DNA from: Trichosphaerium sp. ATCC 40318
Lineage: Eukaryota > Protista > Tubulinea
Length of the DNA stretch: 64,000 nucleotides
Assembly (NCBI GenBank): GCA_038496445.1
Contig: JALMLS010000253.1
Span: 118,298 to 182,297, forward strand
Reading direction: 5' to 3'
Position 1 is the stretch's first letter, and each line of letters opens with the position of its first letter. The notes under the pieces were generated by a model. That model saw only the letters and a list, made by a program, of their open reading frames with translations, did not search any database and was not told the DNA's origin. Below, piece by piece: positions 1-43,730 of this stretch. The position numbers and the translations under genes were made by a program.

Positions 1-3000
1 TTAGCTTACTATGGTTTTTTCTGTATACCCTCCATGCATATTCTGCTTGAGGAGTACCGTACATGCCTTTACCATACCAACCTTCATCTAACCGCTGCAG
101 AGAAGCGAATCCTGTACTACAAATTTTAAGAGCAATGTCAAGTGAAGTACAATGCCAGAAAGGTACAAGAGTTGCATTAGTTGCTACGAAACAAAGTAAG
201 CATAAACCAATCTAACGTTGTCCTACCTTTTGCGCTACTTGATCGCATGTGCCATTTACGTAACCTCTCTATGGCAGTTGTACGAGCCACAAGTTCTTCT
301 GGTGTTGATTCGTCGGGCCTAATAAGATATCAGCCAAGTAAGTATGTTCAACAAGCTAACCATTTTGGCTTAAAAGCATCTTTGAAATGTCTTCCATGTA
401 GCTTTTTAAGCTCGCTTTTGAATTGTTTAAGGTGTTCACCATTTATAACAGCGATGATGTCTTTCACAGCAAAGAGTTCTTCTCCTAGAGTAGTACGGAG
501 TAGTTTCATTAAGCTGTCATATTCCTTCACATACATTAATAGTTTTTTTAATTCTCTATTACCTCTGTAAATGTACTACGCTTTATGACCATACTCTTGA
601 AGCTCTGACTTTCATCTAGGGCCCATTTTATACTCTTCATTCTTGATGAAAACTCGTAAGGGCAGTGCTTGTTCCCTAAATGACATCCAACTTCCACATT
701 GCCACAACGAGGACAACTAACTATTTCCACTTGTTCAAGAAAGAATCCACCAGTTCGGCATTTGCTACAAATAAGTGGAAGCCTTTATTGCGAAGAGTCA
801 ACATGGAGAAACGACTGTTTAGGCGGACGTACTTGGCATTGACAAGGTTATTATCTTCCAAGTGTTTAATCACCTTATACCATTTGTTATTACTACTCAT
901 GACACGTGCGTTTCCGAAAATATACAGCCCACATTTGGCCCTAGATAGACCAACACACATACGTTGCTCAGAGGATAAGTATCCCAAAGCCTTGCTGCGT
1001 ACCTAACAAAAACGTTCACTCATTAGGAACAAAGAAGAAAACGTACCAAAGACACAATAATGTACTCGTTTTCTTCTCCCTGGAACCTATCAATCGTTTG
1101 AACGTTTATATCATTCAGCTTCATATTGTTGCGTTTGAGCCTCAAAATCCTGACCTAAAAGCAGTGTTGGAAGAATCCAGTATTAAGACTAACCTGTCCA
1201 AGGTATGCTCCCAAAATTGTGATTGATGTTTGTTTTACACCATTACCAACCATCCAATTTGCAAGAGTGAGAACTAACTCAGCTTCCTTTACGTTTTCTT
1301 GGCTACGACTTCCAGTTGAGTTTTTTTCTTTATGATTGTGTGATAAAAAGAACAGAGAAGGCTCAACACACGTGCTCCTTGAGTTAGTTGAAACCTGTCG
1401 CCAGTCAGATGAGTTTTAAGAGAGCATTAGTACCCTTGGGCTGTCCTTCAAGTGCGGATATATTCCTGCAACACGAAGTAGTTCTGCAAACTCAGGACGC
1501 ATTCTATTTTGTTGTCCAAGTACAACAAGAGGAGCTAAATTGTTTACTAGACGCTCAAAAATAGATACATCAAAGTTGTTATTTCTCTTCAAATGATGCT
1601 CTTCTAAGTTTGGTCTCAATTGCTTGTGATCACCTGTTATTAAAGTTAATGCAGTTACCACGTGAACAAATGAGAGTTAATTACCAATTAATATTATGTG
1701 CTCAAGTGTAGGTTGCAGAGTAGCAATGAAGTTTGACTCTAACACTTCTGCTGCTTCTTCAACAATCAATACTTTTGGCTCTATCATAGCCATCAATTCG
1801 ACATTCAATGCAAATCCCGTAGTTGTCATTCCAATAATAGAAGAATCTTCAAGGATTTGCTCGTGAATTTGTCTCTTCAATTGTGCATGATCTTCTTGAG
1901 CTTCTTCGTATGCTTTGATTAACTTAGTAGATTTTTCTTTGGCTTTTTGCAGAAACCTAAAAAGCGAGTTAAGTCAATAAACTTAAGCGATGTTCCTTAC
2001 CTTGCTTTCCATATTGTAAATAGACGAATTCGTTGCTCCATATGCAAGTCTGTTAGATCATCTGTTGTTAATAATATTGAGTCTTTTGCACCATTGCTTT
2101 TAACGTTCACAGATAGATTCGAGAGTCTTACACGTCTGTAGTCAACATGAGTTCTACGAGCAAGTTGCCTGTGTTTTTCGATTTCTTCAACTTCTTCTTC
2201 ATCTATTTCTTCATGATCTTCCTTAGTTTTGAGATCATTCATATTAGAACTAATATACATCATTGTTTGAGTCGAAAAACCGTTTTAGTAAGACGCACTT
2301 TGGAGTCACGTGTGGTGATTGACTTTTTAAAATTTTCTTCAAACGTTTTGCAGGAATCCATTGTTTGAAGCCTTCAAACAAAGCGTTTCGCGTATTTTTC
2401 GTCAGATGATCTCTATCAACATCACCTACACTTAACTGCACAGTTGCGAGACTTCGTTTTTGTGCTATCGAAGCAGAAACCATAAAAATATCAAAATTTG
2501 AAGGGCTGGATAGCTTGTTAAAGTTAGTGGCAATCTTGGTCTCCAAAGTTCGTAGTGTATCTTTTGTGTTCATATAATCGCTGTAAATATCACGATCCAC
2601 TTTTCTAGAACTGAACAGAGATGTTTCCTTCTTGTATAGCATGTACGGTTCAAGAATCGGAAGCTGACAACTAAGCAAACATAAGTATTTTCAAAAGTAG
2701 AACTCATACCGTCCTCCAATACGCGTCATTGCCTTACAAAACTTTAAGCACGATGAAAGAAATTGATCCAAGCAGTGATTCTTGTAAGTTACAACAACAA
2801 CAGGGCCATCAGGATTAGCACTTAAGATCATCTCTGTCAACTTCAACGCAACATATGTCTACATAAAGAATAAACATTCTTGTAGCACGTAACCAAAAAT
2901 TTTAGTACTACCTTTCCAGCGCCTGGAGGACCTTGTATGAGAGCGATAGGATTTTTCATTACATTGGCTATAGCTTCAAACTGTGTATCATCTACCAACG

Positions 3001-5076
3001 TGCTAAACTACTTGTTAAATCTATTACATTAATAAAGTTATACCAAACGTGTTTATAGCTTGGAAGCTGAGATGAACGAATAATCATTGAATGCCCAGTG
3101 AGAGGTTTTATGTCTACTACACCTAAGTACTCAGGTATCTTTTCGTAAAATACACCTATGGGATTTATTATTTTCTAGTAGTACTACTTGAAACAACTTA
3201 CCATCTACAAGAGACTCTGAGAAAGGTAAACTATCAGAGGAGAAATCAAGCAATCTTTTCAGTACGGGCTGATATGCTCTGTAATATGCTGGACTTTCTA
3301 CCATAACAGCATTCTTCCATTTTGACATAGTTTCCAGGGCTTCATACGTGTCCATTTCTTCCACTTTGACTAGTATCGTATCCTTTTCTATCACGCAATT
3401 GACATTAGATTTTCCTACAAGAACAAAGAAAAGTACGTACTTGGGTCTGGTTCCTTGTTTATTACTGTAGCATAGACGACATTATCATCAAAAGTTCCAC
3501 TTCCAGAAAAACATAACAGGTTCCCTTGCATCAAGCTTCTTCCCTTTCTCCAATCTTTGCGTGCTTTGTGCGCTTTAGCTGTTAAGGCAATACCATATCC
3601 GCGACAATGAGGAGCAAAATATACACCAGCAAGGTTTACGTTTGTAAATACTTTAATATCACGTGGATCATATTCCTATTTTTTAGCGTAAGTATATACC
3701 TGTATACTACTAATGTCAAGTCATACGGCAGCAAGAATATTCTTCATGCCACGTGCAAGTGCAGTGAAGCAATCAGCTCGAAGTAATCGAAAATATGTAT
3801 CCAAATATTCATCGGCGTCGTCATAAGGCCCACTTGTTTTCACAATAGGTAGAGGCGTTTCTAAGATCGTCTCTTTGCCAATAAATTCTTCTAATAGTTG
3901 GAGTTAACACCACAACGGATAACAAAAGGACAGCTGAAATACCTTGAGCTGGAAATAACGACAGCTCGTGCCATTCCAAAAGTGACACGTGTTGAGTTGG
4001 AAGAATAGCCGAAACTAAATATTCAAGAACCTTGTTACCGCTTTCAGTATCAAGGCTCACCAACATCTCAAACAAAGGCATCACATTCCTGACATACTTG
4101 GGACAGTACTTTGCGAAAAGACCAAGAAATTCCCATAAATATTCTAACTCGCCACCCTGCTCTAATAAAGCAGCGTATGGATATACTGAGGATTGACTAA
4201 GCAGTGAACTATCTACTGTCGCTAGACCTTCAAAGAGTTTACTTCGTCTAAAAAATAATAGTGGTGAGCCTGATTCAACCAGCTGTACAAGTACCTTGAT
4301 GTGTCCTTTATTATTTGGAGCATTATAAAACATTTTCTTAGTACTATTGCAGTGACGGCAGAGTTCCATGATTTTGATACCATAAAGCCTTTCCAGACGT
4401 GCGGGAACTAGTGACATTAACAAAGAAAAAGAGGATACGGTGCATAAGAGGTGGTTACCTGAGTGATTAATGAAAAAACTTGAAGAGGTGTCTTTTTCAT
4501 GAGGATATTACCGAAAGCTCTACAATCTTCAGCGGCCTGGCAACGCACCCAAGTAAGAGATTTAGCCCAAAAAGAGCCCTTGTGTTCTCGGTAACTACCG
4601 CTGATGATATTTCCTTTTTGGAGTAACTCACGTAATAAAGCTAAAGCGACAGGATCCAAAACATTAAAATTAGAAGCCCTGGAAATAAAAAAAAATAATT
4701 AAAAAACACCAAACAAACCTTTGTCAAGAAAAAAAATCACGTGCCTGAACTTAATTTCGACTGTACTATCGTTCAAAAGAACGAGTTTGCCGAATAAGTC
4801 GTCATTTTGTTTGTTCAAGACGATGACTCTCCCTTTATTGAAATCTACGTTCGTCGACCTCTTGAAAGGTGATTTAAGCAATGGAGGATCGAACTTGTTC
4901 TGTTTCACTTTGTGATATGCGTTCGGCTTTTTTCCTTGCTTGGCGCTGTTCCCTTTAATACCTTTCTTGGCGTTTCTTTGCTTATTGGAAGCCTTTGGAG
5001 CCTTTGAACGCTTTGCGTTACGCTTACGATTATTGCGCTTCTTTGGAGGCGGTTTATTAGGTTGTCGCTCTGCCAT
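1..5076 (-). CDS. ZNFX1: ZNFX1-like Upf1/SF1 RNA helicase with Cys-rich segment and C-terminal PARP-like ADP-ribosyltransferase domain (multi-exon, 3' end outside window)
   Basis: Spliced exons give Walker A IALIQGPPGAGKT (~2912-2950), VVTYKNHCLDQFL, IIGMTTTG..VLIVEEAAEVLE..ILIGDHKQLRP, TIDRFQGEENE and RMCVGLSRAKCGLYIFGN, all typical of the ZNFX1 helicase. Then LICSKC..CPRC..C..HC. Exon 10-183 reads FWHCT..ICSTGF..DEGWYGKGMYGT..EYA (PARP-type). Confidence 0.88.
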
Positions 5077-5252
5077 GAGATAACCTTGCTCTCAGAGACT
5101 TAACTACACTACGGCGTCAAAAACAATCAAGAATAGTTTTGACATTTTGAAGCTGTCAAAACCAAGCCTGATAATTTTTTGTCTGATACTAATCTATCCG
5201 TAAGTGTACTTTTTCTGTTACTTACTTCTTTGCATTCCCTTTATATATCTTA

Positions 5253-6416: not shown

Positions 6417-9400
6417 TTAGCACTGGCTATTTCCTATGATTGTAATGATAGTTACAAGAGGGAATCCAGAATCACCTGATCCATTTTGTTGACTGAAAGG
6501 TGTTGATACAATAGTAAGATCCACTTCATCGTTTTGAGAGTCACAAATAGGATTAGCGTCCAAAGGCAAAGATATACTCGCAGGCACATTAACATTTCTA
6601 TTGTATCAAACGTCAGAGTGAGCAAAAACCATTAAAATGAATCGAATCGTGGACTTACACTGAAATTGGTGATCCTGCTCCGCTTATGTCAAACTTAACT
6701 GATCCAACTGGACCTACTACAGATGCTTCGATAGTTATACTTGCTGTTTGAACAGCAGTAACGTTGATAATATTCCCATTGAATAATGCTTCTTTCAAAA
6801 CAGTTGTTCCACTTAACAATTTGATACTTGGTACTGTAGAGCAAGAAGCATCTCCAGAAACTGGTGCAGAAAAAGCATCATCTGGTACAGAACCATCCGT
6901 ATTCCGCCTGATAATCTCGGCCATTGTAACTTGACGTACTTCCTCAAGTTCCTCTAGAGAAAAGGTTGTTAGATTATCAAACCGCTATAGGGTCTTCTGT
7001 AACTTGGTTTCGTACGTTGAGTAAGACCAGGCTCATTTACACCTGGTAGATTGCCAAAAGAAGGTAGTCCCTCATACCAGAACCTATCGCCATCTCTAGC
7101 ACGTCTGAACTGATCAAGAAGAATTCTTGATGATGTACGACCAAGTACTGATCCTATTTCTCTCTTTTCAGCCATCGAAGCAAACCATGGATCCAAAGCA
7201 GAAAGTTTCTTGTATATCTTTAAAAAGTAGTAAGTACGGCATGCTTCAATCGTCTCATTCATCGATGCGTACCTCTCTTGTGTTTGTGGCTAAGTTTGGT
7301 ACGTCAGGGAATTGATCAAGCCATGATTCGAAACAAGCAAGATCGTCAATTTCTGACTGAGGAGTGGAATTACAAGTATCATATAAACTCTTTGTCCCAG
7401 GAACCAATGGATTCCAGCTCTTGAATACAGTTTCGAAATCTGGTACACCATTATCACGTGCACGTGCCATGTTCAAAGATACAACATCTGAAATAATCAT
7501 TAGTAGAGCAAGACGGTGTTGAAGCGGCGTAAAAAACTGTAACGTGTTGCGTACCAATGCCGGTATTTGATTCTGTTGGAATGTTGAAGTTTCGTAAAAT
7601 ATCTGAGACCATGTGATCAACTTCCTCTATTGGTGTGTACAAGATAGCACGTGCAATATTATCTAAAGTGCCACCAGCACAAGCCTTTCAAACAAACAGT
7701 GAAAAAAGACAAACGTGTGAACAAGTCACTTGACTTTTGGAAAGAAACAACTAGGGAAAGCAGGTAAATATAGTGTACCATTCTTAATGGGAAGACAGGT
7801 CCACCGTTTCCTGTTCCTTGTATAAGAATACCTCCCCACCCCAGAGTACTATCGAGGTTGCCACATTTATCGACTGTAGGTGTTAAATCAAGGATAGCAG
7901 AATGGCCGTAACGTGCTGAAACAGCGCTGAAAAGAATGGAAACACGTGGATCGACAGACGGTTTGTGTCCATGCCACTTTCTAGAAAAATGGTAAGAATA
8001 CCAAAGTAGGAAGCTTGTATTACCCAACGTATCTGGCCATTTGATAGTCTCCAATGAGCTTAGGTAACCACTCGTTGTAAACAACGTGTTGATATTGAGC
8101 TATGTTCAAAGTTCTTGCTTTTTGGAATAACTGCTCATCAGTCCAAGAAGGGTGCTTTAAAAACAATGTCAAAAAAACAAAAAGGAGAATCAGTTAAGTT
8201 GATTGCGTACTTTGGCTTTTTGTTCTTTTGCAAGTCTATTGTGTTCAAGGTGCATTATATGATGTACTGAATTAAGCCCCTGTTGGGAGGACCCTCTTTC
8301 ATCTCCACTAGTAAACACAGTCTCTAAAGGGTCGCCAGTATGTGTTCCTGCGACAATTGGTGTCTCTAAAAACAGCGATTAACAAAAGAATTAACATGTT
8401 TGATGGCTAACGTGTCGTTACTACGCTTGGCATAGTATTAAATAGCTTCCTTCTTTCTGGATTTTCCACGCCAACTCTAGGGTTATCAGGATTATAAGCG
8501 GAGGTCCATTCATGATCTTCTACAATCATTTCACCGCCAACATCTGAAAGGGTTTAGTACGCAGAGAAAAAAAGCAGATAGCAGCTACAAGCAAACAAAC
8601 GCTACTCTCCTAAAATGGCGTTCTGTATTGGTGTTGTAACGTACTTGTTCTGAAGGCGTCTAAGTATGTCTGGTTGTTCCAATAAACAGTTGAAAGGTCA
8701 AGATATGGTGTTTGTTGGTTTAAAGGATCTCGTACACCATCAACAAACACTACTTTTGATTTTCCAATACTTATAGGCGTTTTAAAGGTTACGTTGGTCT
8801 TTCTTCTAAATGGGGGGAAAGCTAAAACGAGAAAAAGTAAATACAACTCATATTTTTGGAAGAGGTAAAAACCGAGAAAAAAACTTCTTGTTCTTGGTCT
8901 ACACAATCACAATGAGAATAATTAACTAACGTACGAAAGAAAAGAAACGGATCATCGTCGCGCACGATAAGCGTATCCATATTTTCGGGAAGATTAGGGT
9001 TAGAAATTGTATCGAATTTGCTGGTCTAAAAAAAGTTAAAAATAGATCCCATATTGAATCTATTTTGTGAAACAAAAACATTTTAAAAGATTAACTTTAA
9101 AAAATGATCACGTGATTTAAAAATTTAAAAAGATCTTCGAACTGAATAGATAAAAAGGCCGTTGATGAAAAAAAAAGCCTACATAAACGTACTAGGGTCA
9201 TATCGTGCATAATGAACTGCCCAAAGAACGTATGAAAAAGATTTATCCTCTTGATGTTTAATTGAGCTCTTGGGTTTTGTGGCTTACCAAGAAGCCCTAG
9301 AGTTACATCTCGTACTCTAGGTCTTCCATTAAGTGTCGGTGTTTCGAAAGGAGGCGATGTATCGTTGTAACCAACGCCCTCTTTTGTTCGTAACATAACA

Positions 9401-42186: not shown

Positions 42187-42678
42187 TCATACAAAATGGC
42201 CTATTAATCCTTGTAGTTCTTGAGTTTCACTAGCTTTGGATTAGTGACAGAAAGTAAGCTCAAAGTGCACCTGATAAGGAAGGGATTAAGGACTCGAAAA
42301 TAGCAACGTCTTTTGTGAGTTCTATTGTATTATTTAGCGTATTTTTTAAGATGCGAGCGTACTTTTGTGGCTATCTAAGTATCTGGCTTGTTTTTCTCGT
42401 AACGCTAACTGGGTTTTTGCGCTTTGACCGTTGTAGTACTAGTTTAAATGTTAAAATGGATTATTAGAGGCAAAATAAATAAAATAGCCGTTGGTTACCG
42501 TTTGCAAAGCTTCGCTTTCATTCCATAGTGAAGCCACGACGGAAGATACTTTAGTAATAGGAAGAACTGTTAGTTCTTCTTTATACTTCTCCTTCACATC
42601 ACGATTAAATGTAAAGTATGCACTCATAGTAGTTTGGTGAAGTACTGGCGCGAGCGATTTAGTCTTTTTCGTTGCCAT
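42187..42678 (-). CDS. Small divergent HMG-box protein (~125 aa, 4 exons)
   Basis: MATKKTKS..TTMSAYFTFNRDVKEKY..PITKVSSVVASLWNE..YY follows HMG-box spacing. Three GT-AG introns give an open frame ending at TGA 42187-42189. Confidence 0.6.
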
Positions 42679-42769
42679 CAGGAGGTTTCTTTGATTGGAA
42701 AAGACTGTAACGAAAAAGGTCGACTTTTCAGCATTCTCCGCCGCAGAAATACATATTAGTACAAACAAT

Positions 42770-43730
42770 ATGGGTTCGAAATCATCAAAGAAAGCAAAGA
42801 CTGATAACTCTGATAGTTCCAAAACTTCTAAGTCTGCACCTGCAAAGGAGAATACGAAGAAAGAGAAAAAGTCAGCAAGGTCGAAAAAGGATTCAAAACC
42901 TGAGGTAGCTCCTGAAGATACTCCAGATGCCGTCGAAGAGCAGGAAGAAAACGATGACGACAATGAAGAAGAACCTGAAACAAAACAAGACAGCGAGCCT
43001 GCAGAAGATGCTAGTGAGCCTGAGGAAGACGCCGAAGAGTCTGGTGACGATGAAAACGAGGAAGAAGAACAAGAAGACGAACCAGAGGAGGAACCGGAGA
43101 AAGAAAGTGAAGAAGAACAAGAAGAGGAAGCCAAAGAGCAACCTAAGAAAGAGGGTCACATGAGCGACGCGACTGCAGCAGAAGACGACAAGAAATTCGG
43201 TCCTATGCGTAAAATTATCGATGACCACGCAAAAGCTCGCGGAAAGTACTACGATGAAGCTAAAATCGCTCACGATGCTGGGGATGGCGCAAAAGCAAAG
43301 GAGCTTTCCGAAAAGGGAAAGAAAGAAGGAGAGCTAATGAAAGCTGCTCAAGAGAAGCTAGCAGAAGATGTATTCCACTACAAGTACGTTCTTGAAAAAA
43401 AACGAAAAAAAAATCGCTAACGAAACACAGAAACGATAAACTTGAAGAAAACGAAATTGATCTACATGGATTATCGAGTACGTTTCCATAAACGATTATA
43501 GCGGTTAAAACTAACTAATTAATGTAGCTGATCAAGCTTTGGACTTTTTGAATAAGCGTATTGAGTCTCGTGGCGAGGGTAGCGGTGATCTCAATGTTAT
43601 CACTGGAGCAGGACATCACAGCGGCAAAGGAGGTCCAAAAATCAAGCCTGCTGTACTCAAGTTTCTTAAAGAGGGAGGATATGACTTCAAAGAGCATGAT
43701 GACGGTGGTTCAACTGTTGTGACACTTTAA
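42770..43730 (+). CDS. DUF1771 + Smr-domain endonuclease with N-myristoylation motif and acidic linker
   Basis: MGSKSSKK, long E/D tract, AKELSEKGKK, EIDLHGL, VITGAGHHS..KIKPAVLKFL. Confidence 0.88.

Follow-up and report, generated by a model that had tools for sequence, protein, structure and literature searches.

The 64,000-nucleotide (nt) stretch of the Trichosphaerium sp. ATCC 40318 genome analysed here (assembly GCA_038496445.1, contig JALMLS010000253.1, positions 118,298 to 182,297 of the forward strand; hereafter the window) carries at its left end a gene encoding a ZNFX1-type RNA helicase joined to a PARP-fold domain. In the manual exon model, the gene body occupies 5076..1 on the minus strand and consists of 21 exons separated by 20 GT-AG introns of 38–72 nt. 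The in-window open frame is 1374 aa long, contains no stop and leaves the window at position 1, with a donor (GTAAGC at 9-4, minus strand) closing the last in-window exon; together with 80 residues supplied by a transcript contig (see below), the full protein is about 1454 aa. The N-terminal tail predicted from exon 1 is basic, Lys and Arg making up 35% of its first 75 aa. A preliminary description made from the letters of the window had traced the gene from helicase motif VI through GT-AG introns into a Cys cluster, the stretch VKDIIAVINGEHLKQF and a last exon absent from its list of open reading frames (ORFs), and had proposed a single-chain sensor-effector; these elements all lie where it had placed them. 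The features of the gene are listed in Table 1.

Table 1. Features of the helicase-PARP gene (window coordinates)
Feature	Position	Strand	Basis and remarks
Predicted exon 1	4751..5076	-	ATG at 5076 with in-frame stop upstream; encodes Lys/Arg-rich basic N-terminal tail
ZNFX1 N-terminal domain exon	3442..3675	-	Pfam PF25396, E 3.4e-11, 43.5 bits against a 27-bit cut-off
Helicase motif I, GPPGAGK/T	2856..2932	-	Split by intron 2911-2859
Helicase motif II, VEEAAE	1746..1763	-	AAA_11 on exon 1955-1686, E 4e-8
AAA_12 half of superfamily 1 (SF1) helicase	835..1631	-	Pfam on exons; holds GDHKQLRP, QQNRMRP, DRFQGEE and motif VI
Motif VI, VGLSRAKCGLYIFGN	954-910	-	Sequence
Post-helicase Cys/His cluster, CSKC-x14-CPRC-x6-C-x6-HC	662..769	-	Zinc-ribbon-like; zinc-ribbon matches sub-threshold only
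38-nt intron	525..562	-	Unites zinc-ribbon exon with PARP-like exons in frame; X1 joint and L001 alignment
PARP catalytic domain, first two thirds	10..524	-	Exons 524-361, 318-227 and 183-10; remainder left of the window, in L001
VKDIIAVINGEHLKQF	467-420	-	Sequence
Last in-window exon	183-10	-	Encodes ATNATLVPFWHCTS...AEYAWRVY, including ...LVPFWHCTS...GWYGKGMYGTPQAEYAWRVY
Codon of His1327 (triad His), followed by Cys1328	152..154	-	Alignment A1
Codon of Tyr1358 (triad Tyr, in GKGMY)	59..61	-	Alignment A1

The RNA evidence for this gene consists of assembled contigs, not raw reads. Contigs of two runs, X1 (from a 2015 study) and X2, were aligned to positions 1-5200 of the window, and a further contig, L001, comes from a JGI sample, the X1 and L001 assemblies being independent of each other. 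A 1224-nt record of run X1 connects position 1152 to position 10 and extends 254 nt past the latter, with joints at 1192/1153, 1046/1003, 832/783, 562/525, 360/319 and 226/184; all six joints have CT..AC ends when read on the plus strand, corresponding to GT..AG in the direction of the helicase-PARP gene. A phmmer search with the last exon led to a 700-aa protein (P0001) with 100% identity, and L001, a 2116-nt JGI transcript contig, is the sole contig encoding it. L001 matches the exons from 2249 through 10 with 100% identity and with boundaries exactly as in the manual model, and then continues past position 10 for 242 nt (L001 1863-2104), which encode the 80 residues mentioned above and a TAA stop; its short tail has AATAAA. 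Pfam finds AAA_11, AAA_12 and PARP on the single P0001 chain. Since both the X1 contig and L001 span the helicase and the PARP-like exons, the two parts are encoded by one mRNA in one reading frame. The helicase and the PARP-fold domain thus belong to one expressed gene, as the preliminary description had claimed, and the transcripts do not end ahead of the exons at 560-10: both contigs cross them.

The introns from 4458 down to 184 are backed by the RNA contigs and by L001. The intron following NAK (832-783) is 50 nt by RNA; the 68-nt model was wrong at this place, and the correction adds LPLICS and a CxxC knuckle to the protein. For the exon following the Cys cluster an alternative frame was tried and rejected, as it gave stops; the 38-nt intron restores the frame, and the RNA agrees. 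The run X2 contig skips 46 nt (2514-2561, with minus-strand ends AT..AA) and 844 nt (3259-4104, with a 6-nt overlap), and neither skip is a canonical intron or preserves the frame. Because the loose end of this contig at 4608 is the reverse complement of a SMART template-switch oligonucleotide, the two skips are probably reverse-transcription artefacts, an odd isoform being the alternative.

The N-terminal two thirds of the protein is a ZNFX1-type SF1 RNA helicase. In addition to the matches in Table 1, AAA_11 was detected by Pfam on exon 3007-2912, and AAA_12 on P0001 has an expected value (E) of 2.2e-34. The chain has motifs I, II, III, V and VI, and its ATPase/helicase motifs are all intact. 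Of the hallmarks of the ZNFX1 family, the protein has both the PF25396 domain and the UPF1-like SF1 core (AAA_11 and AAA_12). Among the best helicase relatives in the P0001 search are molluscan, cnidarian, vertebrate and fungal proteins that bear the name NFX1-type zinc finger-containing protein 1, with identities of 35–40% for the named rows and of up to 46% when all rows are considered; another relative is called 'helicase required for RNAi-mediated heterochromatin assembly 1'.

The only element separating the helicase from the PARP domain is the small zinc-ribbon-like Cys/His cluster. No zf-NF-X1 match was found at E <= 10 on P0001 residues 380-500, i.e. there is no NFX1 finger array, and the RZ-type finger PF20173, which some of the listed helicase relatives do carry, gave no match in the Pfam scans; the chain ends with the PARP domain. 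Assignment of the Cys cluster as an NFX1 or RZ finger found no support, as Pfam gives neither. The preliminary description had remarked that animal ZNFX1 carries an NFX1 zinc-finger array at this place; the Trichosphaerium protein has neither that array nor an RZ finger.

By sequence and by structural model, the C-terminus is a complete PARP-family (PF00644) ADP-ribosyltransferase (ART) domain. The 57 aa encoded by the last in-window exon alone match Pfam PARP with an E of 0.017, and their nearest ESM Atlas clusters are PARPs. A phmmer search of 1.84 billion proteins with this exon gave 554 cluster representatives at E <= 0.001, and all nine of the proteins scanned from this search had a Pfam PARP match. 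A word-indexed protein search with the PARP part retrieved the protein itself and nothing else, an outcome set by the index and its length window that does not speak against the existence of relatives. P0001 itself matches Pfam PARP with an E of 7.6e-6, and when its 230 C-terminal residues were used as the query, 149 of the 150 best representatives aligned (E 1e-13 to 1e-40). In alignment A1, which comprises 48 full PARP domains of the subfamily, the catalytic columns contain His in 46 sequences and Tyr and Glu in all 48, and two Gly are also invariant. The His-Tyr-Glu (H-Y-E) triad is complete in the Trichosphaerium protein, in which the subfamily's invariant elements G-x-G-x-Y and Y-x-E-x-V-V-F are likewise kept. 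The third triad residue, which the preliminary description had expected to the left of position 1, is Glu1436, within the 80 aa encoded by L001 beyond the window. The PARP catalytic pattern it had read from the last exon stands in part: His and Tyr are in place, but the motif is H-C-T and not H-G-T/S.

The profile built from A1, when searched against all PDB sequences, found only PARPs (ZAP at 4e-8, PARP12, PARP2, PARP10, 14, 15, 3 and 1, and tankyrase), and the strand bearing the Glu aligned with the C-terminal strand of PARP2 and ZAP. An AlphaFold2 model made from A1 has a mean predicted local distance difference test score (pLDDT) of 90.3 and a predicted template modelling (TM) score of 0.87, and is confident across the site for nicotinamide adenine dinucleotide (NAD+). 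The top Foldseek matches of this model in PDB are ZAP, PARP1, tankyrase and PARP3, all with a probability of 1.00. VIA-align gave Z-scores of 15.4 for tankyrase 2, 14.7 for PARP12 and 14.5 for ZAP over about 150 residues, and the AFDB cluster matches are all PARP catalytic domain proteins, with TM-scores up to 0.83. A PARP fold, which the preliminary description had read from motifs, is therefore what Foldseek, VIA-align and the A1 profile all return.

The relatives of this domain form a large PARP subfamily with the consensus WHGT..GFANL..D.GFFGKGIY..AEYA.RVY...Y.E.VVF. They are amoebozoan and metagenomic proteins, with Mastigamoeba balamuthi EP00727_P013680 and Copromyxa protea EP01127_P016970 as named members, and match the Trichosphaerium domain with E of 1e-20 to 1e-40 over about 200 aa, sharing its invariant residues. 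In these proteins the domain is combined with protein kinases, TPR/WD40 STAND-like regions, Sel1, FG-GAP and, in two cases, a SidE-type phosphodiesterase (PDE). A helicase is present in none of the other 149 best representatives, whereas the Trichosphaerium protein has one. This is the pattern of a domain that behaves as a portable effector module, as far as can be judged from the domain combinations. In the two cases with a PDE, P0005 (743 aa) and P0006 (847 aa), the PARP-like domain is directly followed by the SidE phosphodiesterase (PF12252, E 1e-26 to 1e-29), and in one of them a protein kinase precedes the PARP-like domain; the pairing of ART and PDE is as in Legionella SidE, but the ART is of the PARP type and not of the R-S-E type. 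Two PARP-like copies per chain were seen in several relatives with FG-GAP, TPR or other repeats, i.e. P0002 (from Mastigamoeba balamuthi, 1529 aa), P0004, P0034 and P0020.

The preliminary description had treated the joining of a ZNFX1-type helicase to a PARP-like domain as new. This was overstated, since the P0001 search revealed at least 12 further ZNFX1-like helicases that carry a PARP domain, all of them from ENA, JGI or Logan contigs and some encoded by uninterrupted ORFs. For example, P0280 (1903 aa) consists of a ZNFX1 domain, an AAA_11/AAA_12 helicase and two PARP domains, P0293 (2317 aa) of a ZNFX1 domain, a helicase and one PARP domain, and P0203, with the order helicase-PARP-PARP, is an uninterrupted 955-aa ORF on a 1.5-Mb contig (L002 1-5868; ENA ERZ24900295, contig ctg6625l). 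Upstream of P0203 by 1.4 kb, and on the same strand, is a 540-aa AAA_11 ORF, which is probably the N-terminal half of the P0203 gene, separated from the rest by an intron or a frameshift. The order of ZNFX1 domain, AAA_11/AAA_12 and C-terminal PARP is common to these proteins and to that of Trichosphaerium. However, their PARP domains, which are often in tandem, belong to another subfamily (KFHGT..GMYGKGIYFATDSSKSA..NDEFVV), and three of them keep Cys/His-rich finger arrays ahead of the PARP domain, whereas the Trichosphaerium protein is without such an array.

Against its own subfamily (with a profile built without it) the Trichosphaerium domain reaches 190 bits, against the other subfamily 16 bits, and in a phmmer search with this domain the other helicase-PARP proteins were absent among the 152 matches at E <= 10. 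In the helicase tree, the Trichosphaerium sequence is on a long branch. A quick tree set it beside the PARP-bearing helicases, hinting at a single origin of all helicase-PARP fusions; this candidate found no support after the approximately unbiased (AU) test and the PARP subfamily scores. A tree holding the sequence with the canonical ZNFX1 clade has the higher likelihood (p-AU 0.83), and because of this and of the long branch, the tree gives no support for one origin. As the PARP domains belong to different subfamilies, the sequences favour independent fusions, and the two kinds of ZNFX1-PARP fusion probably arose separately.

In full-text literature searches, no account of a protein uniting ZNFX1 and PARP came up, and in a survey of eukaryotic PARP architectures (Perina et al. 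2014, PMC4245714) no helicase is mentioned as a partner. Among the nearest known systems, animal ZNFX1 has, in common with the Trichosphaerium protein, the PF25396 domain and, after it, a UPF1-like SF1 helicase in which the motifs EEAAE and GDHxQLRP occur, and likewise carries an enzymatic effector at the C-terminus of the same chain; in the place of its NFX1-finger/Z-RING/RZ ubiquitin-ligase module, the protist protein has the PARP domain. ZAP/PARP13, PARP12 and PARP7 resemble it in combining an RNA-binding module with a C-terminal PARP-fold domain on one chain, and they provide the closest solved structures by both sequence profile and fold (15–23% identity over the aligned residues). In these PARPs, however, RNA is bound by a CCCH finger array, whereas the Trichosphaerium protein has an ATP-driven helicase; furthermore, the ZAP domain has lost the triad, which is intact here. 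According to a 2025 preprint (10.1101/2025.09.05.674436), human ZNFX1 is an RNA helicase whose RZ and RING-like parts have E3 ligase activity, and this activity is regulated by RNA binding.

The architecture is real and expressed, and from its conserved residues the PARP domain is catalytically plausible. We consider the chances about even that this is an RNA helicase-PARP protein in which RNA binding governs ADP-ribosylation. In such a protein, i) the helicase would bind aberrant or foreign RNA, or a ribonucleoprotein (RNP), ii) RNA binding would recruit or switch on the ADP-ribosyltransferase, iii) the latter would use NAD+ to modify itself, adjacent proteins or possibly RNA, and iv) the ADP-ribosylation would mark or silence the RNP to which the helicase is bound. 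Such a protein would work on the principle of human ZNFX1, whose C-terminal E3 ligase is under the control of RNA binding, but with a different effector chemistry. The acceptor might even be RNA, since some PARPs can ADP-ribosylate phosphorylated RNA ends in vitro.

Several observations weigh against an RNA-governed ADP-ribosyltransferase. We infer the coupling of helicase and PARP domain solely from the architecture, and exon 1 (5076-4751) had no RNA coverage in the transcript runs examined, so that the 5' end is predicted only. The PARP score of P0001 (26.0 bits) is marginally below the gathering cut-off of 26.7, which is passed by six of the eight subfamily relatives scanned (P0012 and P0016 are below it). 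Cys1328 replaces the glycine of HG(S/T), a position with Gly in 43 of the 48 relatives, and is the sole Cys in that column; this change in the nicotinamide-binding motif is the main doubt, as it could weaken or abolish catalysis. Finally, the closest single-sequence match in PDB is the inactive PARP domain of ZAP. The marginal score, the Cys following the triad His and the match to ZAP also speak for the PARP-like domain being a pseudo-enzyme, like that of the long ZAP/PARP13 isoform, and serving the helicase as a binding, localisation or regulatory module. We regard this as having a modest chance of being correct, since His, Tyr and Glu as well as G-x-G-x-Y and Y-x-E-x-V-V-F are all retained and the confidence of the model is high throughout the NAD+ site; inactive human PARPs have lost triad residues. 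An active domain might alternatively have RNA-triggered hydrolysis of NAD+ as its main activity, depleting NAD+ in the style of abortive infection, an option that the preliminary description had raised. NAD+ depletion is a common defence output elsewhere, but in known systems it involves TIR, SIR2 or SEFIR domains and not an H-Y-E PARP, for which NAD+ consumption is less likely. No feature of the gene points to this alternative, which is very improbable.

The protein could also be a true helicase-ADP-ribosyltransferase whose work lies in the cell's own RNA processes (inheritance of small RNAs, heterochromatin, RNA surveillance or granules) and not in defence against viruses or other parasites. 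Precedents for such a role are ZNFX-1 of C. elegans and Hrr1 of S. pombe, the helicase relative named after RNAi-mediated heterochromatin assembly points in this direction, and the gene is expressed in ordinary culture transcriptomes. On the other hand, the other partners of this PARP subfamily are kinases, STAND-like TPR/WD40 proteins and SidE-type domains, a pattern typical of conflict systems, although this evidence is circumstantial, and we consider a purely endogenous role unlikely as a complete account. A defence role, suggested only by these partners of the subfamily, is possible, and a role in endogenous small-RNA pathways or surveillance is just as possible. That the helicase and the PARP-like exons are separate genes, or were joined in a chimeric contig, is hardly credible. 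The evidence does consist of contigs and not of single reads, and run X2 shows non-canonical skips resembling reverse-transcription artefacts; however, two independent assemblies agree with 100% identity on six in-frame canonical junctions over the helicase-to-PARP boundary, the gaps between the exons are merely 38–50 nt, and the product is one 700-aa ORF with a stop, followed by an AATAAA-like signal.

Two other places in the window deserve mention. ORFs adjoining the helicase-PARP gene on the minus strand (6969-8084) contain RARDGDRFWYEG and related stretches, which may be of the kind typical of animal-type haem peroxidases. At 42454-43417, overlapping ORFs on opposite strands match DUF1771 (E 1.8e-13, plus strand) and, weakly, an HMG-box (E 0.001, minus strand).

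Human ZNFX1 deficiency causes severe immunodeficiency, and the mechanism of the protein, in which the helicase governs an E3 ligase on the same chain, is just beginning to emerge. The human PARPs that bind RNA include ZAP, PARP12, PARP7, PARP10 and PARP14; an RNA-governed helicase-PARP protein would add a helicase-driven member to these RNA-binding PARPs. If the same RNA helicase is indeed wired to a PARP domain, the ZNFX1 helicase would be a portable RNA-sensing module, and ADP-ribosylation could replace ubiquitination as its output. PARP domains of two subfamilies have apparently been joined to the ZNFX1 helicase separately in other lineages. A wider proposal, which we put forward as speculative and on balance improbable, is that ZNFX1 helicases may serve eukaryotes in general as an RNA-sensor chassis on which the effector has been exchanged again and again, for a ubiquitin ligase in animals and for PARP domains of two or more subfamilies elsewhere, the protein described here being an RNA-activated ADP-ribosyltransferase that would tag the bound RNP or the RNA; if true, this would give eukaryotic immunity a new class of nucleic-acid sensor-effector built on a single chain. 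The Trichosphaerium protein offers a compact system for asking whether RNA binding switches on a PARP.

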